A model generated the notes under the pieces. The model searched no databases. It was not told where the DNA came from and worked only from the letters and a program-made list of their open reading frames with translations. The translations under genes were made by a program, and so were the position numbers. A stretch of DNA of 64,000 nucleotides from Podarcis bocagei (Eukaryota), in NCBI GenBank assembly GCA_964188305.1, contig OZ076901.1. One strand, 5' to 3'. Each line of letters opens with the position of its first letter. The first letter of the stretch is position 1. Positions 9,424-59,590 of this stretch are shown one piece after another.

Positions 9424-10831
9424 TAAATATGTTTCTCTGTGGTTTTAGAATTAATAAAACTGTTAAAAAAAAAGGCAAGCAGACAAAACACCCCTCTACA
9501 GAACAAGCTAACAACAGAAGCTGTCAAAATGCATTAAATTTCCAACCTGAGGTCTTGGAAGTTCTTGATTTGCTGAAGTAAAATGAAAGAGAACTTATTG
9601 AGGCCTTTGATCCATGCAGGACTGTTTCTGTATTGCTGGCCTCTACGTTCCTGATGCAGTGGGGTCTTTGAGACACATTTTGTTCTCTTCCCTCTTCCTT
9701 CACATGGTCCATGCAGGATGGTCCATGCAGGGGCTGCAGACCATTTGCAGAGACCAGCAGAGATGTCACAGTCTTCATGATAGGCTTTTGTCAATAAATT
9801 TGGTGGAATCCTGGGGGAACAGCTACCTGTCCATTTCCATAGGATGCTTCACTGTCTTCCTTCTGGTTGGGCGCTGTAAGCAACTGTTGCGAGAAACTGC
9901 TGGCTGGGCATGCCTAGAGATAGAACAAGGTTGTCTTGGCAGTGACTCTTCTAGATCCGATCATAGGGTTAGTTGGGTAAAACAAAAATGTAGAGAGGCA
10001 GATTGCATAGATGTGCAGTAGGCTTCAAGTGTGCCGAGGGAAGGAGGCCCAGGGACCACTTCCATTGCCCCCCAAATCAACACAGCAAATGATACACCTT
10101 AAGTCTCCCATGCACCACGAGATAGATAGAAGGGAACCCAGTTTAGTTCTTGCCTCCTGTTGCTCCATCACAGAATTAAGGAAGATTGAAGGGAGTGTTT
10201 GGAAGGCACTAGCTCTTTTGCTAGGAGCAGAGAGTATTTACTCACAGCTCATTATTTGCTCACTATTATTTGCTCACATTGGCCTTGATTGCATATCATA
10301 GTTAAAAGCATCTCAACCACTTTTAGCATGTGGGAGAAAAGCTACGATCCTTGACCTAGCATAATAGCCAAAACCAGGATTGCTCAAAACCATGACCTGG
10401 AAGTAAAGAACAAACCTTGACATCACAATCATGGTTTGCTTTGAATGAAACCGATCATGATCCTCAATTTGGGGAGCAAAGCTAGGAATTGTGGTCTGGA
10501 CCATTGAAAACCCATGGCTGCAAGTGAGCTGTTGTTCACATATCGTAACAATGTAAATCAATTGTAATTCCAGCCTCCCCAGAGCTTACATAGTTTATGA
10601 ATATGTGCCATGGTTAGATAAAAGCTGCCCTGTCCCCACCTCAGTCTCACAATCCTCTAGCTTCAGTGTTGGATTTGCTCGATCTTTCAGTGAAAGATTG
10701 GGGTATTTGTAGAATATTTCAAATAGGAGGTGAAACGTCTCAAAGAACTGACTTGCAGACCAGTTAACAGTGGAAAGAGGAAAGCCTTTTCCCCCTCCAA
10801 GGATGGCAGTGTACAACAGAGAAATACTTCC

Positions 10832-11560
10832 TTACAGGCAGAGTACAGAAACGGCAAGCAATGCAAATCCCAAAAAGGAAGAAGTTGGGAATACAGCAAT
10901 ATTGGTTGTTTTCTTTTGAGAAGCGCTTGTAGTGCCATTGTTCTGGCTGGCTGTGGTCTTGGTGGCTTGTCCAGGAGAAGATGAAGTGGCGTTGGTTTGA
11001 TCTTTTGTGACTTTGGCTGTGTTGGTGGCTTGGCCAGAAGAAGATGAGGTGGTGTTGATTTGGCCTTGAATGACTTTGGCTGTGTTGGTAGCTTGGCCAG
11101 GAGAAGATGAGGTGGTGTTGGTTTGACCTTGAGTGACTTTGACTGTGTTGGTGGCTTGGTCAGGAGAAGATGAGGTGGTGTTGGTTTGACCTTGAATGAC
11201 TTTGGCTGTGTTGGTAGCTTGGCCAGGAGCAGATGAGGTAGTGTTGGTTTGACCTTGAGTGACTTTGGCTGTGTTGGTAGCTTGGCCAGAAGTAGAAGCA
11301 GTAGCATTGTTAGCTGGCGACATAGTGGCATTGTTGGTTAGCCCTTTAGTGGACGTGCTGGTGGTGTTGGCGGGTGATGTGGCCATGTCGCTGACTGGGC
11401 CAGGAGTAGAGGGGATAGAGGGGGTGTTGGCTGAGCCAGGACTGGATGTGCTGGTGGTGCTTTGGAAGGTAGTGGGTGAGTCTTTTGCCATTGGCTCACA
11501 GTTAATGAAGTGAAGCCCACTGAGCATTAGGATAAAGATGGAGTGTGGACCGAACTGCAT
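10832..11560 (-). CDS. Uncharacterised GPI-anchored mucin-like glycoprotein (242 aa), single coding exon, nested antisense in the NF1 intron
   Basis: Intact ORF. The ATG at 11560 (gcaggATG, A at -3) lies 15 nt after the acceptor ttgttcttctctaccag (exon from 11575). Signal peptide MQFGPHSIFILMLSGLHFINC, S/T-rich body with 5x21-aa repeats and 9 NxS/T sequons, C-terminal hydrophobic tail ending at the stop codon. Confidence 0.75.
   Translation of the reverse strand: MQFGPHSIFILMLSGLHFINCEPMAKDSPTTFQSTTSTSSPGSANTPSIPSTPGPVSDMATSPANTTSTSTKGLTNNATMSPANNATASTSGQATNTAKVTQGQTNTTSSAPGQATNTAKVIQGQTNTTSSSPDQATNTVKVTQGQTNTTSSSPGQATNTAKVIQGQINTTSSSSGQATNTAKVTKDQTNATSSSPGQATKTTASQNNGTTSASQKKTTNIAVFPTSSFLGFALLAVSVLCL
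10955..11287 (-). repeat. 63-bp coding tandem repeat, 5 full units plus a partial unit
   Basis: Unit GQATNTAKV(T/I)QGQTNTTSSSP; units start at 11287, 11224, 11161, 11098, 11035, partial at 10972. Confidence 0.92.
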
Positions 11561-12016
11561 CCTGCACCTGGGGTTCTGGTAGAGAAGAACAATACAATAC
11601 AATTAATATATAACTCACAGTTGTCTTTGTAAATGGCTTGCTGGCTGCTCAAACTAAGCCATCCAACTGTGCCTCCTTCACAAAGTCACCTTCAGGGCTC
11701 ATGAGATCTTGTTTTTGGACTTTGCCAAGCATGTGGTGCACCTTTACCACTGAGATGTCTATCCTATGTGACTTTTTAAAAAGTGATGTAAATTGGCCCT
11801 TGGATACAGCGATATCAAAGCAGAGATACATTGTTTTGCATGCCACACAACATCATAAGAAAAATATGAGATCTAAGCGGGCCAAATCTTGTTGCTTTTG
11901 ATGCTGTCTTTTAGTACACATTATTGCAGTTTTTGACCCAAGCCCAGCCCCTCTTTCCTCTAAGTATGCTTTATTTCCTGGGCCCCCAACTTAGAATGAG
12001 ATCCAAAGAACTACAG

Positions 12017-12577
12017 TTATTTATTTATTTATTTATTTATTATACCCCGCCCATCTGGCTGAGTTTCCACAGCCACTCTGGGCCGGCTCCCAATCAAATG
12101 TTTAAAACAGTACAGCGTTACATATTAAAAACTTCCCTGAAGTTAAGATGTCTTCTGAATGTCAGGTAATTATTTATCTCTTTGACATCTGATGGGAGGG
12201 CGTTCCACAGGGCGGGCGCCACTACCGAGAAGGCCCTCTGTCTGGTTCCCTGTAGCCTCACTTCTCGCAGTGAGGGAACCGCCAGAAGACCCTCGGAGCT
12301 GGACCTCAGTGTCCGGGCTGAATGATGAAGGTGGAGACGCTCCTTCAGGTACACAGGACCGATGCCGTTTAGGGCTTTAAAGGTCAGCACCAACACTTTG
12401 AATTGTGCTCGGAAACGTACTGGGAGCCAATGCAGATCTCTCAGGACTGGTGTTATGTGGTCCCGGCGGCCACTCCCAGTCACCAGTCTAGCTGCCACAT
12501 TCTGGATTAATTGCAGTTTCCGGGTCACCTTCAAAGGTAGCCCCACGCAGAGTGCATTGCAGTAGTCCAAGCTAGAA
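12017..12577 (-). mobile_element. L2-clade LINE 3' end
   Basis: ORF 12118..12705 contains LDYCNAL..GLP...LQLIQN.AARLV...DHITPVLRDLHWLPV (L2 ORF2 C-terminus); (TAAA)n tail. Confidence 0.85.
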
Positions 12578-12599
12578 GAGGGAATCTCACAAGTCCCTA

Positions 12600-12828
12600 T
12601 TATTGTTGTTTGTTTGTTGTTATAACCCAACCATATGACTGGGTTGCCCCAGCCATTTTGGCTGGCTACCAACAAAATATAAAAACACAGTAAAACATCA
12701 AACATTAAAAATTTGCCTATACTGGATTGCCTTCAGGTGTCTTCTGAATGCTGTATAGCTGTTTATCTCCTTGACATCTGATGGGAGGATGTTCCACAGG
12801 GTGGGCGCACTACTGAGAAGGCCCTCCA
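12600..12828 (-). mobile_element. Second, shorter L2 3' fragment
   Basis: Similar to the 3' UTR and terminal part of 12017-12577 (CCTTGACATCTGATGGGAGG...TACTGAGAAGGCCCT). Confidence 0.7.
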
Positions 12829-13248
12829 GTTCCTTCAAGGTAGCATTTCAGTGCCTTTTTGGATTCTTTAGAATTTAGATTCTTTAGATTTTCATCTTTT
12901 ATTATAGACTCACTCAGTTGTTAAAATAAAAAAGAAGATGCAGAAGCATTCATTATTTCTGGGCACTATGCAATAAATCAAAATCTCACCCCAGATATTA
13001 TTACAGTTGCAACATCAGGCAGATAACAAGTAAAAAAATTAAGTGGTCCACCAGGACCCTCAACAATGTTCAAGTGGTCTGTGGAGAATAAACTTTGGGA
13101 ACCACTGATCTAATGCACCAGTACCAGTGTTGTGATTATTGTGCCCTTGGAAGAAAGTTGGAAAGCAGACAAAAAATAAATAAATCAAAGGAGCAGGTAC
13201 TATCATGTTCAAAATGAGGCAATTATATCACAGTGTCAAATTCCATAC

Positions 13249-13363
13249 CTCTCTCTTTTCCCCTTCGGATCCTCGTCCTGGGAGATCAAATGCACCTCCT
13301 TGGCTTATCCACCTCTCAGTCTTAGAAACAGCTGGGCAGGAATATTGGGGACTGCAATTTATG
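13249..13363 (-). promoter_or_regulatory. Candidate non-coding exon 1 and TATA-like box of the uncharacterised mucin-like gene
   Basis: Minus-strand donor GAG|GTATGG (exon ends at 13249); CATAAA at 13363-13358 about 110 nt upstream; non-repetitive sequence. Inferred by analogy with the neighbouring genes. Confidence 0.35.
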
Positions 13364-14052
13364 TTGAGCTTAAGAATGATGTAACCATGCAGCTAACAAA
13401 AGGTTCGTTTCCTTGTTTGCAAAGCATAATCCAAACTAAATATTGTTTTTAATAAAAATAGACTTCATGGAGCATTCAGGAAGCATAATAGAAATGCTGA
13501 AAGCATTTTGAACCTTGAATGTTTGCAGCAGTATATTTTGAAATCTAGAGCTGCAGTGTTTTCTTGATCAATTGTCTAGATAGGTATGGTCTGAAGGCAC
13601 CTTGTTGAACTTTAGCAGACCTTAGTCTGATGAGCTTCTTGGAAGAAAGGAGGGATATAAATGTAAGAAAATAAATGCATCAATAAAAACAATCTATTCT
13701 GCTAACCACCTTTTGAGTAAAACTATAGAAAGTTGCCCCAATTGATCAGAATACTTTTTTAAAGACTCTTAACTCATTTCAGTAGAAATGCTAATAAAAT
13801 CAGCATTCCCCCATATGTAGGAGGAAAATAGCACATCTAAGGTAGTGGCAGGTGGATGCATCATCTCAAAACAGTGTGTGATTTTATATTGCAAAAAGCA
13901 ATGTTTTGCTCTAATGTAAATTTACAGATTTAATCAAATCAGTTTAAAGCCACTGGCATTTCATTAACCTGTTGACGGCTCCATTTGCCTTATACCTTTT
14001 ATTATTATAATTGGGTTTTATAAACAATAATAATCTTATAGAAATAAGTATT

Positions 14053-14251: not shown

Positions 14252-16340
14252 TACCAAGTTTTCTCATGTCATATGTATATCACAAAAATAACATAATAAA
14301 TGTGGAAAAATATCTACAACATATGTTTCAAGCATGATGATGTGAAGATAAGCTGGTCTGTCATTCAGAAAGGCACGCTGTGTCTTAGGCTGTGAATATT
14401 TTGTGCACCTGCCTTTTTACTGTGGGTAGGGCCTGGTGAAATCTCAAAACCCAGTGGTATGGCTATGAACAAGCTTCTGGGGCAGCTAAGCTTGCAGGCT
14501 TCCGGATGCTCCAAAAGAAGAACTACAGCTGGGTGCTGCACGATGCTTTGATGGCTGAGGCATTTGGCCGCCCGGAGACCTCAAACTAAAGCAGCAAAAG
14601 GCTATAAGCACATTCCGTGTTTCTTGCACATCTTATGTAGAAAGATGGATCACTGAGCAGCACTGTTTTAATCAGAAATCGCATCAATCAGAAATTGGGT
14701 GGCATGCGTGAGATGAGAAGGGTAAGCAAGTGGCTTTCAGGGTGTATCCTGGAGAAACCTGCCTTTGCTAAGAAGCTTGTCAGATACCCTCAGTGAGAAG
14801 ATTAGCAATGGAAGCTGAGCTTCCCTGAGATCACCATGACCAGTCTTCACCTGAGATGCTTTGCCACAGGGCAAGGCTGCTGTGTTTGAAGGCAGAGGTG
14901 GGAAGAAGCTAGGGATCTGCTGGCAATCTTTGAATGGATAGATTGGCAAGATTTCTCTCTCTCTACTTTCTCCACACCTAATGGGGCTGAGAGGCCAAAG
15001 CACTTGCCCTATCTCCTGTTATTATTATTATACCACACTGCCAGCATCCTCACATCCACTTTGGGAGCCCTGTTAGGCTGAGAATGCAGGGCAGAAATGC
15101 AAGCAATAATTAAAAGCGACAACGCACATTTGGCTGAGATGGAGGGCCACTGATCAGGCAGGGTTAACTGCTAGCATAGCAGGTTCTGCCTCTTCTGTGT
15201 GTCTGGGAATTCACCCTCCCATCTCTCTCGAAACTAGCTATGAGGAAGCTTTCTGAATGCACTGGTTCATTTGGCCCTAGAGTAGTGTAGGTGAGTAATA
15301 GGCCCATTTTTAGCACCTCTGGGATACTGCCACTTCACCTTTTATTCAGTTATGAGATGAGCATATTAATCCTAGTTCTCGCTTTGTTTTTCGGTTCTGA
15401 TTTCCTTGAACCACGGTGGGGGAAAACAACTCTGTGGTTTGGGTTTTTTTAAAAAAAATAATGTAGAACTGGTCTCCCTTTCTGAATCCTCTGCTTCTGG
15501 TAACCATGGAAATGGCTGCTGCAATATGTAACCTGTTGTGGGAGCTGCAAAGCAAGGATCTGGCACGTGTCAGGCTTTCGCTGCCAGTTCTGCCCCTCTC
15601 TACCTTAGCATCTCGCGAAGGAATATTTGCATTCCAAACAGAGTCGTGGTTTTCCGCAGCCTCTCACAAGGACACTGGCCTGGGTTTATTTCCAGAGTTC
15701 ACTCCTCCAAGCCTAGACAGCCTCTGACTTTTATTACTGAGGTAACTAAAGGCATGAATTTACTGGTCTCTCTTTTGAATTAGTACCCAACCTTTCCTCC
15801 CCCCAAAAACCAACTAACTAGAATATACTGCTCCTGCTGCTTTAGGTCAGCTTAATCATTCAGCCACCGCCTATTCCTGCTTTTTGTGTGCACCCAGTTC
15901 CTACAAAGCAGATACTTTGCCCATAGCTCTCATTTCCAGGGAAACCAGGCTTCTGCATGGCTGTCGTCAGTACATCCGTTCAGATAATTGGCTTTTTGAT
16001 GGAGTTTCCTGATCGCTTCTAGTGAAAGCTCCATGTTGGACAGTGCAGAAAGCTGCCTTCTGTCTGGTCCGATTATTTGTCCTCCTAGCCCATCATTTTC
16101 TACTCTGCCTGGCAGATGCAGCTACAGAGCAGTCTCTTTCCCACGCCGTGCTACTTGATCCCTTTTTAAAGCTGGAGATTGAACTTTGGGCTTTTTACAT
16201 GCAAAGCAGGTGCCCTACCTCTGAGCTTGAGCAGAGCTCTGAGCTCTGAGCTGCATCTGAGCCTCCCCTCATCGAACATTCTGTCATTTCTGGATACAAA
16301 CTCAAGGTTATTCAGACAAGACTTGAGCCCTGTGCACAGA

Positions 16341-16770
16341 AGGGCTGTAGCTCAGGGCAATTTCTTTGCACACAGACGGTCAAAGGTTCAATCCCCAATG
16401 GCATCTCCGGGCAGTGCTAGGAGATTCTCCCTGTTTGAAACCCTGCAGACCTACTGCCAGTCAGTGTACAGTGGTACCTCGGGTTACATACACTTCAGCT
16501 TACATACGCTTCAGGTTACAGATTCCGCTAACCCAGAAATATTACCTCGGGTTAAGAACTTTGCTTCAGGATGAGAACAGAAATCATGCAGCAGCGACAT
16601 GGCGACAGCGGGAGGCCCCATTAGCTAAAGTGGTGCTTCAGTTTAAGAACAGTTTCAGGTTAAGAACGGACCTCTGGAACGAATTAAGTACTTAACCTGA
16701 GGTACCACTGTATTCCCTTACTGGGCTAGATGGACCAGTGGTCTTGCTCAGTAGAAGGCAGCTTCCTGTA
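16341..16770 (+). mobile_element. Squam3-like SINE interrupted by a family A MITE
   Basis: GGGCTGTAGCTCAG...GGTTCAATCCCC head; body resumes (CTGGGCTAGATGGACCAGTGGTC...AAGGCAGCTTCCT) after the MITE. Confidence 0.7.
16469..16710. mobile_element. pogo/Tigger-like MITE family A copy 3
   Basis: TA|CAGTGGTACCTC ... GAGGTACCACTG|TA, with perfect TA duplication. Confidence 0.9.
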
Positions 16771-17559
16771 TTCAAGCAGCATGTTGTAACGGGATTGGGA
16801 TCAAGCTGTCCCACCCTGCCTTATCCAGTTCCAACCTGCAGGTGTTGGTCTTCTATCCACAAACAACTCTTTGTAAAAGTGCTGGCCAAACAGATGGGGA
16901 TAGAGGAGCAGCCTCTCTGGAGCTCTATGGGAGATTAGGGACCTGTGCACACCAGATTAAAAGATCCGGCCACCCAGTGAGCATATTTTTTTTGTTCTGA
17001 AGAAATGGCCAGATTTTTCACTATGAACTCTTGTGTTGTGATGTATTGTGTGCCCCATCTGAATTGCCCCCTAATGATACAAAAGGGCTATCCCTGAACT
17101 AAACCAACCTTCCTGTTAGTTTCTAGAGAACTGGAGGCTAAGGCTGCATACATGCATTCATGCTTAACCACGGTTTGTTTTCCTTAACTTTGGCTGTGCT
17201 AGGTTATGACACTTTTAACCATGGCTATGCGTTGACTGCAAACCATGGCGTAAAGTCGTGATGTGAAAGGGGTTTGCAGAACACTTGTTTGGTTTTAGCC
17301 ACAGTTGATTGTTTCATCTGTCTTGAGCAATGCAGCTTCCTGTCGCCTCTTGCCACTGTCTCCCTATATGTAGGGCTTACCTCAGCAAATTGAAGTAATG
17401 ACTTTATTGTATGCTTGGGAAGAGAATGTGAATTAAGGCAACCAGCTGCAGTGAGTGGTAAGCCTAGCCAACAGTGCAATCCTAACCATGTCTACTCAAA
17501 AATAGATCCTGTTGAGTTCAGTGAGGCTTATTACCTGGTTGATGGGGTTAAAAAAAATA

Positions 17560-18715: not shown

Positions 18716-20044
18716 TCACTTAAGCACAAATCCATAGCCAGACTGCAGGGCCACTGTGGTAAGCATTACGACAAAGGCCAAACCCCCCTTGGGAATATTT
18801 GCCTTGGAGGGTGCGCGAGGGTTGATTTTTGTGGTCGTCTCCTCTCTCTTTACAGTAACAGCTGTGCTCTGTGGTCTCTTTGAGTAGTTTGTAGGCATCC
18901 CACTGGTGATGCTTAAGGTCATGGGAGTGGTGGACGGTCCTACCAAGCCCATTGTGCTTGAATTCACAGAGGTTGCCTCTTGCATGTCGATGCCGTTTGT
19001 GGCTGCAGCTGCTTCGTAAGAGCTGAGTTTCTCTGTGCTCAGGTCTTCCGGGTAGAGGACCAGTGGCCTGTCCGTGCTCGTGAAGGCGATGGTTTGGCCA
19101 GTGGTGGCGCTCAGGCCAACATCCTTCATTCTAAATTGTTGGTGCACTTGTCCGGTTTGCTCCGTTGCCACTGGAGACCCAGCTGCGTCCGCCGCCTTCA
19201 TTGCTTTAACAAGGAGGTGGCTCTCTGCAGCTGTGGAGAATGGCGTGGCAGCCTTCCAAGGGGTGGTGGCCTCATCTGAGCATGGCGACCCTACAACGGT
19301 AGCCCTTGTCTCTCCTATCCATTTCTGCAAATAGGAGAGGTCCTGCTTGTTATCCTCGCACGACCAGGGGTTGTTGTAAAGCGTGACGAGCTGCAGCTGA
19401 GCAAGCTGGTCGAAAGCCTCGTCAGGAATATAAGCAAACTTGTTGTTGTGTAGGTAAAGTTCGGAAAGATGTGCCAGCCTCGCCAGTGTGCCGGGGAGTA
19501 TCTGTGTCAAGAAGTTGTTGGATAGATCCACTGTCTCGGTGTTGTAAGGAATATTGGTGGGCACCGTCCACAGTTTGTTGCTACTGAGGTTGAGGGACTT
19601 GAGGCTGATCATGGTGTTGTTAATCAGAACAGCCCTTTCCACCATATTCCCAGACACGTCGAGGACTTTAAGGTTCCACTGGTAAGCTGTGTCCAGCTTC
19701 TGAAGGACCTTGATGTTGTTGTGTGCAGCATATATTTCCCACAGCGACCTGGGCAGATAAGCCGGGAGGCTCTGGAGCCAATTGTGGGAAATGTCCAGGG
19801 TCCTCAGATTGGCAAACCGAGTGAGCTGGTGGTTGAGGTCAGCAAAGTGGTTATAAGACAGGTTTAAATAGGTAATGTTGTCCTGAAGTCCATGTGGCAG
19901 CGTGGTCAGGTTTCTGCTGGAGCAGTCCACGTTTCTGTCATTTCCTGAGCACAAGCACGCCAAAGGGCAGATACCCTGGACAGCTGGTATGAAGAAGAGA
20001 AGCGCCAGGACGCAGGGCGATGCCTTCAAGACCCGGTTCTCCAT
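18716..20044 (-). CDS. OMG: Oligodendrocyte-myelin glycoprotein (442 aa)
   Basis: Signal peptide, Cys-rich LRR-NT (ICPLACLCSG..RNVDCS), LRRs (LDISHNWL..LPAYLPRSLW, LNLSSNKLWTVPTN, LYNNPWSC), S/T-rich stalk (TPMTLSITSGMP), GPI-type tail; acceptor tgtttccag 6 nt before the ATG; known position inside NF1. Confidence 0.97.
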   Translation of the reverse strand: MENRVLKASPCVLALLFFIPAVQGICPLACLCSGNDRNVDCSSRNLTTLPHGLQDNITYLNLSYNHFADLNHQLTRFANLRTLDISHNWLQSLPAYLPRSLWEIYAAHNNIKVLQKLDTAYQWNLKVLDVSGNMVERAVLINNTMISLKSLNLSSNKLWTVPTNIPYNTETVDLSNNFLTQILPGTLARLAHLSELYLHNNKFAYIPDEAFDQLAQLQLVTLYNNPWSCEDNKQDLSYLQKWIGETRATVVGSPCSDEATTPWKAATPFSTAAESHLLVKAMKAADAAGSPVATEQTGQVHQQFRMKDVGLSATTGQTIAFTSTDRPLVLYPEDLSTEKLSSYEAAAATNGIDMQEATSVNSSTMGLVGPSTTPMTLSITSGMPTNYSKRPQSTAVTVKREETTTKINPRAPSKANIPKGGLAFVVMLTTVALQSGYGFVLK

Positions 20045-21539: not shown

Positions 21540-22280
21540 TGTCTAAGAGCGTAAGGAGAGCCCTGCTGGATCAGACCACTGGCCCATTGAGTCCAGCATC
21601 CTGTGCTCCCAGAGGCCAAGCAGATGCCTCCGTGGGAAGCCTGCAAATGGGACCTGAGGCACAACACAAGCCTCCTTTCCTGTGGTTTCCAGCAACTGGT
21701 ATTCAGAAGCAGGCTGCCTTCATCAGTGGAGGGAAAATATAGCCATCACAGATAGTAGCTATTGATAGCCTCCATGAATTTGTCTAATCCTCTTTTAAAG
21801 CCTTCCAGTTAGTTGGCCATCGCTGCCTTTGTGTGGGAGCGAATTCCAGTTCATTATTTTATTTTGTCTGTCCTGAGTCTTCCTACATTCAGCTTTGTTG
21901 GATGACCTGGAGTTACAGTGTTATGAGAGAGGGGGAAAGAAACTTTTCTCTATCCACTTCCTCCATTCCATGCATCATTTTATACAATGTCACCTCTTAC
22001 TCACCTTTTCTCGAAACCCAAACGCTCCAGATGTTTTAGCCTTTCCTCATAGGTGAGCTTCTTCACTCCCTCGGTCATTTGGGCTGCCCTTTTCTGAACC
22101 TTTCCCAACTCTACAGCATTATTTTTGAGGTGAGGCTGCGAAAACTCCGCACGATACTCCATAGATTTGTATAATGGCATTATGATATTGGTGGTTTTAT
22201 TTTCAGTTCCTTTCCTAACGAGCTCTAGCATGGAATTTGCCATTTTGACAGCTGCTGCACACTGGGTTGACATCTTCATG
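21540..22280 (-). mobile_element. CR1 LINE 3' fragment
   Basis: ORF 22001..22294 QCAAAVK.AN.ML..V......IIMPLYKSM...PHL....ELGKVQKRAA.M..G...LTYEERLK.L is the CR1 ORF2 C-terminal region. Confidence 0.8.
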
Positions 22281-22904
22281 TCATCTTCACCCACCTAACA
22301 GATTAACCCCCATTGACCCAAACGCTAACAGAGAGACCCTGTGCCGAAATTGCCTGTCTGATTTAAGCAACTACCGAGTAAAGCCCGTTATTCTCAGCGC
22401 TGCAATCGGTTTTAATGACTTGCCAGCTGCAATATAATATAGCCACACTGAGAATTAGTGGTGCACGTGACTAATAAAAAGGTAACAGCGTGTGCTGAAA
22501 AATAAAACTCTGAAACTTTTTTTCCTTACTATGTCTTTTTTTATAACCAACTAATTCCAAGAGCAGCTTTGAAAAGACCCCATCCCTCTGTAACGCCTTG
22601 TACTTCACCTGTCTTTTCAAAGTCCCCCACATTTTTGTCTATTTTGAGTTGGCACTATTCCTTACAATGGTTGAATAGTCTTTTCCGCAGTTCTATCTGG
22701 AGACTAGACTAGGAATATAAGAAGAGTTCCGGTGGGTCAGACCTTTTGTGGCCATTTCATCTGCCATCTTTTTCCCCGCAGCAGCTTCCAGGAATCCCAC
22801 ACGCAGGAAATAAAACAGCAGCCCTCCCATTGGGTTTCACATTCATACTCAAAGGCAACTGATAGTGAGAGGGAGTCTGCCTCTGATCATAGAGGTTATA
22901 ATGA

Positions 22905-28310: not shown

Positions 28311-29162
28311 TCAGTTAGATAACAAGTCTTCTGGAGGAGGTGGTAGTAGTAGTTCTTCGCCTGGAATTTGATGGGAGAGAACTAGGGATCCAGAACCCTG
28401 GATCTCTGCAATTGGTTCAAGTGAGAGGGACTCTGTCTGCTTTGGACAGAGATCCTCATTAGCTCCATCAAGCCAGTTTGGCGGTGGAGGCAAATCAAGT
28501 GGCTCTGGACTATCAGACTGGAGTGGAACATCTATCAAGCTGCATGGTTCTTCAGAAATGGCAGTTTGCATGCTTGCAGAAGAAGCTGTTGCTGTGGAGC
28601 TTGACTGCGTGCCACTCTCTTCAGCCCCACATATAGGGGGAACATCCGGGCCTTGGCTTGATTCAGACAACTGTCCCTGCACATTTTCCAATAGCTGCGT
28701 ATCCTTGTTGAATTTCCAAGGCAAGAAGGAGAGAACTGAAGTCCGCCTCGTGTCTTGAATAGGTTCTTTATCCGCAGTCGTATCTGGTACCTCTCCATCC
28801 GCAAATGGGGAACGGCCTGCCCAGTGCGGGACAGGTGCAGCGGACCTTCTCCATCGCCTCCATAGGAAGATGCCAACAATAATTACTATCATGACAGTCA
28901 GGATGACCCCAATTACTACCGCTGCTATGAAGTGTCCACCATCGTGAGGTTTGGGATCTTCTGCTGCAGGAACCTGGGGCTGTGTGGTGGGTGTTTGCTG
29001 GTTGAATTTCACAGGGTCTCCAGGTTCGCTTGTTTCGTATGAATGTATGGGGTTTTTTCCACCAGTGCCAACTACTGCAGTGGTAGTGATCAGAAGTGTA
29101 GTTGATACGTTCCACCACAGCTGCCCGTAGAAGAAAACAAGCACAATGGCTCTGGAGTCCAT
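28311..29162 (-). CDS. EVI2B: Ecotropic viral integration site 2B protein (CD361), 283 aa, type I membrane protein
   Basis: Signal peptide, short T/P-rich ectodomain, TM FIAAVVIGVILTVMIVIIVGIFLW, diagnostic WAGRSPFADGE and RTSVLSFLPWK motifs, Pro-rich LPPPP C-terminus; acceptor ttgtgccacag, exon from 29188. Confidence 0.95.
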   Translation of the reverse strand: MDSRAIVLVFFYGQLWWNVSTTLLITTTAVVGTGGKNPIHSYETSEPGDPVKFNQQTPTTQPQVPAAEDPKPHDGGHFIAAVVIGVILTVMIVIIVGIFLWRRWRRSAAPVPHWAGRSPFADGEVPDTTADKEPIQDTRRTSVLSFLPWKFNKDTQLLENVQGQLSESSQGPDVPPICGAEESGTQSSSTATASSASMQTAISEEPCSLIDVPLQSDSPEPLDLPPPPNWLDGANEDLCPKQTESLSLEPIAEIQGSGSLVLSHQIPGEELLLPPPPEDLLSN

Positions 29163-38362: not shown

Positions 38363-39184
38363 CTAAATGATGGTTGTGGTGCTGCTGGGTGGCTTTGCCA
38401 ACACCTCCTTGAGCTTCTGCCTGTCTGACAGTTCACTCGCTAGTTTCTTGCTGGCTTCTTCGCCAGTTTTCCCTTGTCCCGCTTTTGTTCTCTCCGACCC
38501 CGTTCTTTGTGCCATCAGCTCTGCTGCTGCTGCCTCATTGGTCATCCTCTGCAACGTTTCTAATCCAGCTGGCCACAAGCTATTTGCGGTGAGGAAATCG
38601 CCATTGCTCCTGAGGGGGCGCTTGCTTGCCTGCCTTTTCTTCATATAGGAGAGTTTGTTTGCCATTGCAACAGTAGCCACAAGTAGACATACACAAATGA
38701 AGATAAGCACCCCGATGATGATGAGGCAAATCAGTATTAGCCTTTTGCTGTTCTCTTCGCAGAGTTCAGCTTTCATTTGATCCTGACTAGGAGTTGCAAG
38801 TTCTTGATCTGTACCAGTAACGGTGGAGGGAGATGGGGGCACTTCTGGTGCAAGCGTTGAGGGCATTTGCGGGGCAGTTGATGTCTCTGGTGAGGACTGA
38901 GAGGTGGATGCTTGCCCTAAGGATGTCCAACTAAAGGTAGTTGGCTGCATTGTGGATGTCGATTGGAAGGTGCTTATCTGTGTTGTATAAGTAGACGTCT
39001 CCCCCAGAGGCAATGTTGTAAGAGCCCCACTGGTGTGTGTTGGGGTTTGAGTTGTAGGGACGGTGGGAGTTTCTGTTGTCGTCAAAAGAGCTGTGGTAGT
39101 GTCCGCTCTTACTTCTATGTGAAATAGCAAGATGGCCCACCAAAGGAAACCCAAATCCATGTGAGAGTTGCCCATCAGTTTCAT
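38363..39184 (-). CDS. EVI2A: Ecotropic viral integration site 2A protein (273 aa), type I membrane protein
   Basis: Signal peptide, T/S-rich ectodomain, CEEN...LICLIII.VL...C..L...TV.MANKLS TM region, KRPLRSNGDFL..NSLWPA motif; acceptor ttattcttgcag, exon from 39205, ATG at 39184. Confidence 0.95.
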   Translation of the reverse strand: MKLMGNSHMDLGFLWWAILLFHIEVRADTTTALLTTTETPTVPTTQTPTHTSGALTTLPLGETSTYTTQISTFQSTSTMQPTTFSWTSLGQASTSQSSPETSTAPQMPSTLAPEVPPSPSTVTGTDQELATPSQDQMKAELCEENSKRLILICLIIIGVLIFICVCLLVATVAMANKLSYMKKRQASKRPLRSNGDFLTANSLWPAGLETLQRMTNEAAAAELMAQRTGSERTKAGQGKTGEEASKKLASELSDRQKLKEVLAKPPSSTTTII

Positions 39185-40340
39185 GTTTATGGGGACGTTT
39201 GCTGCCTGCAAGAATAATAAAGTGACAGGGTTGAGTTTGTTTTGCACCCACAGAAACACTTGTTTCAGTTGTCAGAGAGGCTTTTCCTAAAGGAGAACTT
39301 AAATATTATCATGTTTGAATTGTGTTGTGGCATGGTTTGCTTATTCGTTTCTAATTACCACATCCCTAGGTTTTAAAGGAGATAAACACCACACTATAAA
39401 AGCATAATAAAAATCAACAAGCCCCGTATAGCTTGTTATTATGGATTAAAGCTTAATCTGACTTTGGGTCTAAGGTATAATGGCTTTCATCTTATAAACT
39501 AAACACAGATTGAAGATTGATTGCTCATAATTCATGTTCTCAAGCCTCATAGATATTAAGAAAAATATAGTTTCTCTTTTTGGTTATTTATAGCATCTTC
39601 TGTTCTGTTAAACTTGGAAGGGATAAATGTCATGGCTGTTTTCCCATCTGTGCTGAAACTTAAATTGCTTCTGCGAAAGATTCTTCCACAAGCCATCAGT
39701 GCCTTGCAGAAAAGTAATAGAGGAGGTTTTATTTATACAGCACAACCAAAATGTATCATTTTTTCATGAAAAAGTCCTTCAGAAGGTAGACTCTTTGAGA
39801 AGTTTTTTTAGTGCCTTTGCTATATCTCTGGTAACCTTCAGATACACCAGTGCTTTCCAGCAAAACAAAAGGACAACGCCCTCATGTTCCTATGATCATG
39901 AACAAAGAGCCCCAGGCAATCTGTACATATAAAGAAGAGCACAAAAGCAACTCTTCAGCAGTTCATTTTGAGAGCTACATTACTCATCTAATATAACATG
40001 TTCCTTCAGCAGTCAGTGAAGGGGCATCCTATTGTTTTGATGCCTGCATGGTGCTTCCTTTGTATGAAATGTTTTGGAGAGAGGGGGCTGTGTGCATCCT
40101 GTAGATCTGTAGGTGCCCAGTTCAAAAATTGGACATCCACCGTGGAATTGGGTGTCCCATGAGTCCGTAAAGCCAGTTCACATGTAAAAAAGGACACATC
40201 ATATAACAATAGATTGCAGATCTAACCCACATTGGGAGAGCTTTCCTTCCATGCACCTTGTGCTAACTTTGCATGTTGCAGGAAGAGAATTTTAGTGAGA
40301 GATCCCATTGAAAACTACAACCCTCCTCCACCTGAAGTGG

Positions 40341-44750: not shown

Positions 44751-45254
<504 letters not shown>

Positions 45255-45927
45255 TAGGGAATTGTGCCATATATACATTTAGGGCAGTGTGGATTCTCCA
45301 TTTAAAATGAGCAAGTGCAGAGCATTGCATGGCCCTCCAGATGTTGTGGGACATCTACTTTCATCATCCCTGACCACTGGTTGTGCTGGCTGGGGCTGAT
45401 GGGAGTTGGGGTTTATTAAGCTTAGCTGTACAATTGTATGCAGTTGTAAACAAATTCTGCTTTATTGAAAGCTTTATTCATACACACCACGCACAAGACT
45501 GCTTGCCTTGCTGTGACCAAGATTTCCTGATCAATAACAGATTTTATCTCTGTCTCTCACCGTCTCTCCCAAAGTGACTGACCACTTGCTAGAAGTCAAC
45601 CAGGAGAAATGTTAGCTTGCTAGTCAACCATTTTCTGTTCCAAAGTAACCAGTTCATACAGCTTTCTCCTGCTAAATAGCTTGACTCCTTGAGAAGAACC
45701 CGATTTCAGAGTGGTTAGGATTCTTGTACCAAATTAATACACATACTCCCATAGAGATTGGTTGCCATCCTTTTTGGAAATGGCACATAAAGAATAAATT
45801 GATCTTACTGTTAACTAATGAAACCCCTTACTCTTTTTAAAAGGAGGTAACATAACTGGGGGTTTTTTTTGGGGGGGGGAGTGCGTTGACCATGTTTTCC
45901 TTGTACAAACTAAATACCTTTCCATAG

Positions 45928-59407: not shown

Positions 59408-59590
59408 GGGACGTGCCATAGCTCACTGGCAGAGCACCTGCCTTGCATGCAGAAGGCCTAGGGTTCAATCCCCAGCATCTCCTGGGAGAGGCTGCTGTCT
59501 GAAATCCTGATGAGCTGCTGTCCGTCAGTGTAGACAGTACCAGGCTAGATGGAGCAATGGTCTAAGGCATCTTCTTGCTTTCCATATTTA
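59408..59590 (+). mobile_element. Squam3-like tRNA-derived SINE
   Basis: CATAGCTCACTGGCAGAGCA A-box, GGTTCAATCCC B-box, CAGTGTAGACAGTAC body. Confidence 0.7.

Follow-up and report, generated by a model that had tools for sequence, protein, structure and literature searches.

CD24 and CD52 are small glycosylphosphatidylinositol (GPI)-anchored sialoglycoproteins of vertebrate blood and neural cells. OMG is GPI-anchored as well and has a serine/threonine (S/T)-rich C-terminal region, and it shares with EVI2A and EVI2B a two-exon layout in which the whole coding sequence (CDS) is placed in exon 2. The human NF1 intron contains exactly three nested coding genes, namely OMG, EVI2A and EVI2B (PMC4394429). 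In the 64,000-nucleotide stretch of Podarcis bocagei DNA analysed here (assembly GCA_964188305.1, contig OZ076901.1; hereafter the window), these three are accompanied by a further open reading frame (ORF) of 242 codons, which very probably represents a real and conserved protein-coding gene. The original prediction, made from the letters of the window, had described it as a fourth gene nested antisense in the NF1 intron, encoding a GPI-anchored mucin with tandem repeats.

An antisense reading frame beyond OMG and its orthologues

The new ORF is open over positions 10832-11602 of the minus strand and has its first ATG at 11560, 7.16 kb beyond the stop codon of OMG and on the same strand as OMG, EVI2B and EVI2A; the intact frame announced at about 7 kb past OMG is therefore present as described. 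Only OMG, EVI2B, EVI2A, the new ORF and an alternative frame through its repeat reach 200 amino acids (aa) or more in the window. For a survey of synteny, 10 kb were fetched on either side of OMG orthologues, whose sequence identity across sauropsids is 65-97%, and NF1 is called on the strand opposite to OMG in every fetched locus. Orthologous ORFs were found 6.4-9.5 kb past OMG in Zootoca vivipara, Podarcis muralis, Lacerta agilis and the amphisbaenian Rhineura floridana, and 7.5 kb past it in the turtle Emydura macquarii (Table 1). They share the frame and both termini with the window ORF, and the position of the stop codon is identical in all squamates aligned. The closest of the species compared is P. 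muralis (94% amino-acid identity, dS 0.03), while the Rhineura orthologue is recovered by tblastn in both its N-terminal (E 9e-25) and C-terminal (E 3e-13) parts. The turtle N-terminus resembles that of the lizards (MxFxxH...LML..LH; shuffle p ~0.002).

Existing annotation already holds a 281-aa product exactly on the L. agilis ORF and a 226-aa product starting exactly at the Sceloporus undulatus ATG. Automatic annotation has thus picked up the gene in at least two species, where it is uncharacterised and unnamed. The earlier statement that it is not recognised as a named gene holds in that no name, Pfam family, database relative or paper was found, and has to be amended for these automatic calls; full-text literature searches brought up nothing on a fourth NF1-intron gene. 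A scan with HMMER of 1.84 billion representative proteins gave only four weak matches, all within the repeat (best E 3.5e-9), and five orthologues matched no Pfam family at E up to 10, including the EVI2A, CD24 (PF14984) and mucin models. Word-indexed protein searches, whether by the lizard protein or by an alignment of six species, were blank, and exact look-ups of all orthologues gave no match; the L. agilis and Sceloporus models evidently lie outside those sets, so that the blank searches carry little weight. By a language-model feature search, the lizard, Rhineura and turtle proteins are all nearest to the same two unnamed clusters, followed by CD24, C1orf54-like and fungal/plant GPI-glycoprotein clusters (scores 0.79-0.87), which we take as a lead only.

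Judging from its presence in squamates and a turtle, the gene is old. The fetched Elgaria and Anolis loci stop short of the expected exon 2, which makes the missing ORF match there uninformative, and the block around the putative exon 1 in both argues that they possess the gene too. Neither exon was seen within 10 kb of OMG in the gecko locus. In the emu, an S/T- and proline (P)-rich stretch about 10 kb past OMG (L009 ~21645-22470) ends in sequence homologous to the turtle tail (tblastn E 0.002; DNA score 44 vs 21 +/- 3 for shuffles); its reading is distributed over three frames, the N-terminus lacks hydrophobicity, with the core of the signal peptide degraded, and the acceptor AG is absent. 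It is a probable decayed remnant, that is, a pseudogene of the new gene. As a separate observation, no EVI2B is called between EVI2A and OMG in the emu locus. In the gharial (L011), the 10 kb next to OMG gave no comparable ORF, and the blocks that flank the turtle ORF are about 490 bp apart (16567-17054) vs 2.9 kb in the turtle; the gene may have been deleted here, perhaps in crocodilians. No such gene is known at this position of the NF1 intron in mammals.

The frame bears the marks of coding constraint. Indels were counted in a codon-blind nucleotide alignment, and the ratio of non-synonymous to synonymous rates (dN/dS, omega) was computed by NG86 and LWL85. All indels in the CDS are multiples of three (3, 6, 9 and 63n), and no pair shows one that breaks the frame; of the 10-12 indels in the adjoining intron of the same species, 6-9 have lengths not divisible by three. 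Differences are concentrated at third codon positions (for instance, 5/8/19 by codon position). The dN/dS comparison, which had been proposed as a check on the gene, gives omega of 0.25-0.39 among lacertids for the non-repeat codons (Fisher p 0.001-0.015). The signal peptide has 0 non-synonymous vs 1-3 synonymous changes among lacertids and an omega of ~0.10 vs Rhineura; taken together, signal peptide and tail have omega of 0.05-0.16 in lacertids and ~0.3 vs Rhineura, with dN of 0.009-0.028 vs an intron K80 distance of 0.066-0.08. For the ectodomain, omega is 0.3-0.6 within lacertids and 0.7-1.0 vs Rhineura, its non-repeat N-terminal part (residues 22-88) giving 0.4-0.6 and ~0.8-1.0, respectively. 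These values show selection on the two targeting signals, the composition and the frame, and not on the exact sequence of the ectodomain. Such a pattern is expected for a mucin-like protein, in which frame, composition and targeting signals are kept and the sequence of the stalk is free. The syntenic intact ORFs, the frame-preserving indels, the third-position excess and the low omega of both signals bear out the proposal of a fourth antisense protein-coding gene, and the frame is intact in the three other lacertids, the close relatives in which its disruption would have spoken against a gene.

Proposed gene structure and predicted product

Signal-peptide and attachment-site (omega-site) assignments were made with simple rules of our own (hydropathy, the -3/-1 rule and small-residue triads) and not with dedicated predictors. 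The N-terminus, the C-terminus, the nine NxS/T sequons and the body free of cysteine (Cys) are all as the original prediction had read them. The core of the predicted signal peptide, SIFILMLSGL, averages 2.3 on the Kyte-Doolittle (KD) scale, and a cut after INC would agree with the -3/-1 rule; in all seven orthologues a hydrophobic core (KD 2.3-2.9) lies within residues 7-17 and compatible cleavage sites are present. The two Cys of the 242-residue protein are placed in the signal region and the tail, respectively. S+T make up 28-39% and Pro 6-8% of the orthologues, all of which have a Cys-free body, and lacertids have 8-13 N-glycosylation sequons, compared with 3 in Rhineura and 2 in the turtle. 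At the C-terminus, the candidate omega sites S212 (SAS, 10927-10925) and N220 (NIA, 10903-10901) are followed by a short polar spacer and then by a hydrophobic end of 13-16 residues without charge. The best C-terminal 13-mer has KD 2.5-2.9 in all six complete orthologues, with 0 charged residues in the last 16. Small residues followed by a hydrophobic, uncharged end are a hallmark of GPI signals and not of stable membrane spans, and this common ending in the six complete orthologues supports the GPI-type architecture that had been proposed, anchoring itself being predicted from the layout. The product is likely to be a glycoprotein of the secretory pathway, and on balance we expect it to be GPI-anchored.

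The window array was detected by Tandem Repeats Finder with 90% matches and no indels, and corresponds to residues 89-201; every 21-aa unit holds one NxT sequon. Copy number ranges from about 2 in Zootoca through about 5 (window) and 6 (P. muralis) to about 7 in L. agilis, and the array is seen in these four lacertids only, Rhineura and the turtle having none. The tandem repeat that had been described is thereby confirmed as an in-frame 63-bp x 5.4 array and restricted to lacertids. From its distribution, the array is an expansion in lacertids of a pre-existing GQA(S/T)-type motif and not a defining feature of the gene. A second frame through the repeat (10687-11331, minus strand, 214 aa) is open in all four lacertids and closed in Rhineura; it is a by-product of the stop-free repeat unit. 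We also considered whether the ORF derives from a transposable element (TE) or a minisatellite, and rejected this since the ORF is single-copy at its syntenic site while true TE pieces match many places.

A block with long invariant runs in the alignment of lacertid, Rhineura, Sceloporus, Elgaria and Anolis is located about 1.7 kb upstream. It contains in order an ETS-like TTTGCAAACAAGGAA(A/G)C (13423-13407, with a GGAA core), CTTTTGTTAGC (13402-13392) and a TATA-like CATAAAT (13363-13357), and we infer from these motifs that it functions as the promoter. The ETS-like, TATA-like and donor motifs each occur a single time per locus, in syntenic position, in eight squamates, apart from a few exceptions; at the mismatch limits used, the TATA-like motif was not found in Rhineura, nor was CTTTTGTTAGC in P. 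muralis. The start of exon 1 is an estimate only, placed ~30 nt past the TATA-like box, and the donor AGGTATG(G/A)AAT(T/C)TGA is matched with at most one mismatch in 8/8 squamate loci reaching that point. The putative intron 1 would be 1141-3280 nt long across the four lacertids and Rhineura. As for the acceptor, the pyrimidine tract that had been noted, with an AG 15 nt ahead of the ATG, exists (11592-11576), and this AG is lost in Rhineura and Sceloporus; the conserved acceptor is instead the AG 7 nt before the ATG, within a CAGGT that is invariant in the six squamates aligned. The turtle acceptor (aaaacag/aaacaagATG) has the identical 7-nt spacing behind a pyrimidine tract. Because the putative exon 1 lacks an ATG, the first ATG of the spliced RNA would be that of the ORF itself, with A at -3. 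We lean towards this two-exon model with the proposed promoter. The variant poly(A) hexamers downstream, CATAAA (10599-10594, +233 from the stop) and AGTAAA (10242-10237, +590), keep their positions in the window, P. muralis and Zootoca. Splicing from a donor at the stop codon, where a GTAAG overlaps it, would allow the frame to run on; it was rejected because the exon side CCT is poor, the turtle lacks the GT and the model annotated in L. agilis goes no further than the stop.

Two side observations concern the flanks of the gene. A TE ORF fragment (12118-12705, minus strand; motif HITPVL..LHWLPV..RAQFKVLVLTFKAL; no Pfam match) is situated inside the putative intron 1, and copies of it are found at 2480-2595 of the window and upstream of the ORF in Rhineura (L004 20380-20685) and P. 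muralis (L002 17447-17800). In L. agilis, alignment with the other lacertids is lost ~30 nt past the stop (L003, from ~18575 onwards), likely owing to an insertion or rearrangement in the presumed 3' untranslated region.

Table 1. Positions of the predicted gene parts, the neighbouring genes of the NF1 intron and the orthologous reading frames (window coordinates unless a fetched locus is named)
Feature	Locus	Positions	Strand	Basis or remark
Coding sequence	window	10832-11560	minus	242 codons + TAA stop (10834-10832)
Predicted signal peptide, residues 1-21	window	11498-11560	minus	simple hydropathy/cleavage rules
Non-repeat N-terminal ectodomain, residues 22-88	window	11297-11497	minus	S/T/P/N-rich composition
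In-frame 63-bp (21-aa) tandem repeat, 5.4 copies	window	10959-11296	minus	Tandem Repeats Finder
Predicted GPI-attachment signal	window	10835-10927	minus	simple rules
Polypyrimidine tract with two AGs	window	11568-11592	minus	second AG (11569-11568) invariant; exon 2 would start at 11567
Putative intron 1, 1681 nt, GT...AG	window	11568-13248	minus	ends GTATGG...CCCCAG in four lacertids and Rhineura
Putative non-coding exon 1, ~86 nt, no ATG	window	13249-13334	minus	ends at donor GAG GTATGG
Putative core promoter	window	13335-13470	minus	conserved block, motifs at syntenic place
Candidate 3' end region	window	10237-10599	minus	variant poly(A) hexamers
OMG	window	18716-20044	minus	LRRNT/LRR matches in Pfam; 97% identity to Zootoca vivipara OMG
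EVI2B	window	28311-29162	minus	Podarcis muralis orthologue (locus L002) carries PF27913
EVI2A	window	38363-39259	minus	PF05399, E 3e-38
NF1 exon	window	~44790-45257	plus	CRAL_TRIO_2 and PH_NF1
Zootoca vivipara orthologue	L001	19613-20155	OMG strand	intact, 179-180 aa
Podarcis muralis orthologue	L002	18383-19174	OMG strand	intact, 263 aa
Lacerta agilis orthologue	L003	17700-18545	OMG strand	intact, 281 aa
Rhineura floridana orthologue	L004	20814-21269	OMG strand	intact, 151 aa, no tandem array
Emydura macquarii orthologue	L010	18794-19231	OMG strand	intact, 145 aa
Sceloporus undulatus ORF start	L006	21100		first 80 codons open up to locus end

The NF1 exon that opens the intron lies outside the window, and the intron is therefore longer than 44.8 kb. 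The interval that separates OMG from the new gene contains a non-coding element of deep conservation, read on the minus strand (15395-15706 and 15916-15969). It is common to lacertid, Rhineura, Sceloporus, Elgaria, Anolis and the gecko Eublepharis, and its near-invariant cores comprise TGGAATGCAAAT (octamer), a CACGTG E-box (changed in Elgaria) and CCATTTCCATGGTTACC (X-box-like). The element is probably an enhancer. The Rfam scan gave no match in the region of the new gene; elsewhere in the window, a marginal tRNA match on the plus strand (59419-59474; 30.6 bits vs a gathering score of 29, model positions 8-63) is likely a tRNA-derived short interspersed element or pseudogene.

Proposed product and alternative explanations

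Taking these features together, we infer transcription, splicing, signal cleavage, glycosylation, GPI attachment and cell type from sequence. A TATA-type promoter would drive a non-coding exon of ~86 nt (~13334-13249), which would be spliced to exon 2 from 11567, so that the whole protein would be encoded in one exon as in OMG, EVI2B and EVI2A. After entering the endoplasmic reticulum via a cleavable N-terminal signal peptide, the product would be decorated along its disordered stalk, S/T-rich and free of Cys, with many N-glycans (at up to the nine sequons) and probably with O-glycans too. At an omega site of small residues, a GPI anchor would then replace the hydrophobic C-terminus. What reaches the plasma membrane would be a small mucin-like glycoprotein on its outer leaflet, with a build like that of CD24 and CD52, in which the 21-residue unit of lacertids would have grown into a length-variable array. 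The ETS-like promoter motif and the nearby octamer element weakly hint at blood or immune cells. This joint reading, a maintained two-exon nested antisense gene for a small GPI-anchored mucin-like surface glycoprotein, is in our judgement a likely one.

A number of observations weigh against it. The ectodomain evolves at about the rate of the intron (dN 0.05-0.09 vs K80 0.066-0.08), and CDS identity among lacertids is overall no higher than intron identity. Furthermore, the CDS has a dS of 0.14-0.18 among lacertids, roughly double the K80 of the intron (0.066-0.08); CpG or GC-rich codon effects, or misaligned repeat-like motifs, are possible causes. Pro makes up just 6%, little for a classical mucin, basic residues are missing from the n-region of the signal peptide, and the position of the lacertid N220 is occupied by Arg in Rhineura, so the exact omega site is not conserved. 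In the window, no AATAAA or ATTAAA occurs within 2.7 kb of the stop, and the gene is uncalled in the Zootoca, P. muralis, Rhineura and Emydura annotations.

One alternative is an ORF that is open by chance, namely a stop-free intronic minisatellite flanked by open sequence and giving no protein. The repeat alone keeps frames open, as the second frame of 214 aa (open in all lacertids) demonstrates, and the nucleotide identity of the lacertid CDS equals that of the intron. However, Rhineura and the turtle have no array and are nevertheless intact, open in this frame only, with the same termini and acceptor spacing. The frame-preserving indels, the third-position excess and an omega of 0.05-0.3 in the signals speak for a protein, and the ORF sequence occurs just once at each fetched locus, in contrast to the adjoining TE fragments. 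We regard chance as extremely improbable; the original prediction had come to the same view from the two targeting signals, which lie outside the repeat and share one frame, and the retention of that frame across species, array-free ones included, strengthens the argument. Another possibility is that a once functional gene is now decaying in lacertids as a relaxed, expanding variable-number tandem repeat that has lost its function. The probable remnant in emu shows that the locus can decay, the ectodomain dN is close to the intron rate and the repeat copy number differs in every species, but four lacertids at intron K80 of 0.05-0.08 all retain frame, ATG, stop, tail and a signal peptide with 0 non-synonymous changes, which makes decay very unlikely.

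The remaining alternatives accept a real gene and concern its product or its origin. The C-terminal segment might not be exchanged for GPI, leaving a tail-less type I membrane protein or one that is secreted or degraded after inefficient processing. EVI2A and EVI2B next to it are transmembrane mucin-like proteins, and the omega triad is not strictly conserved: those compatible with the rules are SAS and NIA in lacertids (SIA instead of NIA in P. muralis), GGS/GSS/SSA in the turtle and NKT only in Rhineura. On the other hand, 6/6 complete orthologues end directly after 13-16 hydrophobic residues with no charged or cytoplasmic residue, the stop position is conserved, and small residues are present 18-30 residues from the C-terminal end in all, and a product without GPI seems unlikely to us. 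The gene could also be a diverged paralogue of EVI2B, EVI2A or the S/T stalk and GPI signal of OMG that arose by local duplication in the intron. Strand, cluster and a two-exon layout with a single coding exon are common to all of them, the GPI anchor and S/T-rich C-terminal region of OMG itself are textbook features, and a BLASTP match to the EVI2A ectodomain (E 0.001) covers 47 low-complexity residues. That match is confined to an S/T/P-rich stretch and unsupported outside it, while BLASTP gives E 0.19 against EVI2B (compared by BLASTP only, as PF27913 is seemingly missing from the profile set, with which the window's own EVI2B gave no PF27913 match) and E 39 (Rhineura) and E 3 (turtle) against the species' own OMG, in line with the lack of any Pfam family; we consider a local duplication rather improbable.

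Going beyond the joint reading of a maintained GPI-anchored glycoprotein gene, we put forward, as an evenly balanced proposal, that the fourth gene of the NF1 nest may be ancestral in sauropsids (at least in the turtle-lepidosaur ancestor), a gene for a fast-evolving GPI-anchored mucin-like glycoprotein, without a detectable relative in the protein databases and without literature, that would be absent from the annotated mammalian nest and decayed in at least one bird. Its length-polymorphic glycan array in lacertids could then belong to an immune or blood-cell molecule under diversification of the host-pathogen type.

Comparison with known nested genes and surface glycoproteins

OMG, EVI2B and EVI2A in their NF1 intron are a textbook case of nested genes, and reptiles seem to keep a fourth member that belongs to no known family and is alike in strand and exon layout. 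The view of the origin and pruning of this nest is altered accordingly, the gene having been lost or never gained in mammals and apparently decaying in emu. Reptile biology gains an orphan surface glycoprotein that has been missed by several annotations and by the profile libraries, as well as a clean case of a tandem repeat expanding inside a selected coding frame. In practice the gain is modest, consisting of a curated reptile gene model and a candidate cell-surface marker, and the gene is an addition to a classic locus rather than a new mechanism.

With EVI2A and EVI2B, the new gene shares the intron, the strand antisense to NF1, a putative two-exon layout with the CDS in the last exon, a signal peptide and an S/T-rich ectodomain. 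It differs from both in that their transmembrane helix is followed by a conserved cytoplasmic tail whereas the new protein stops at the end of its hydrophobic segment, and no significant similarity connects them. OMG is the adjacent upstream neighbour on the same strand and is comparable in its GPI anchor and S/T-rich membrane-proximal region; it is distinguished by LRRNT and LRR domains and by high conservation, while the new protein is domain-free, dissimilar and fast-evolving. CD24 and CD52 have no sequence similarity to the new protein and a different genomic location, their precursors measure ~40-80 aa vs 145-281 aa, and the 21-aa tandem repeat of lacertids belongs to the new protein. In architecture, and in architecture only, they are the same, with a signal peptide, a short Cys-free, glycosylated body rich in serine, threonine and asparagine, a GPI-type C-terminus and no cytoplasmic part, and for each of the three orthologues tested the feature search ranks the CD24 cluster among the closest clusters that have a name (0.79-0.84).

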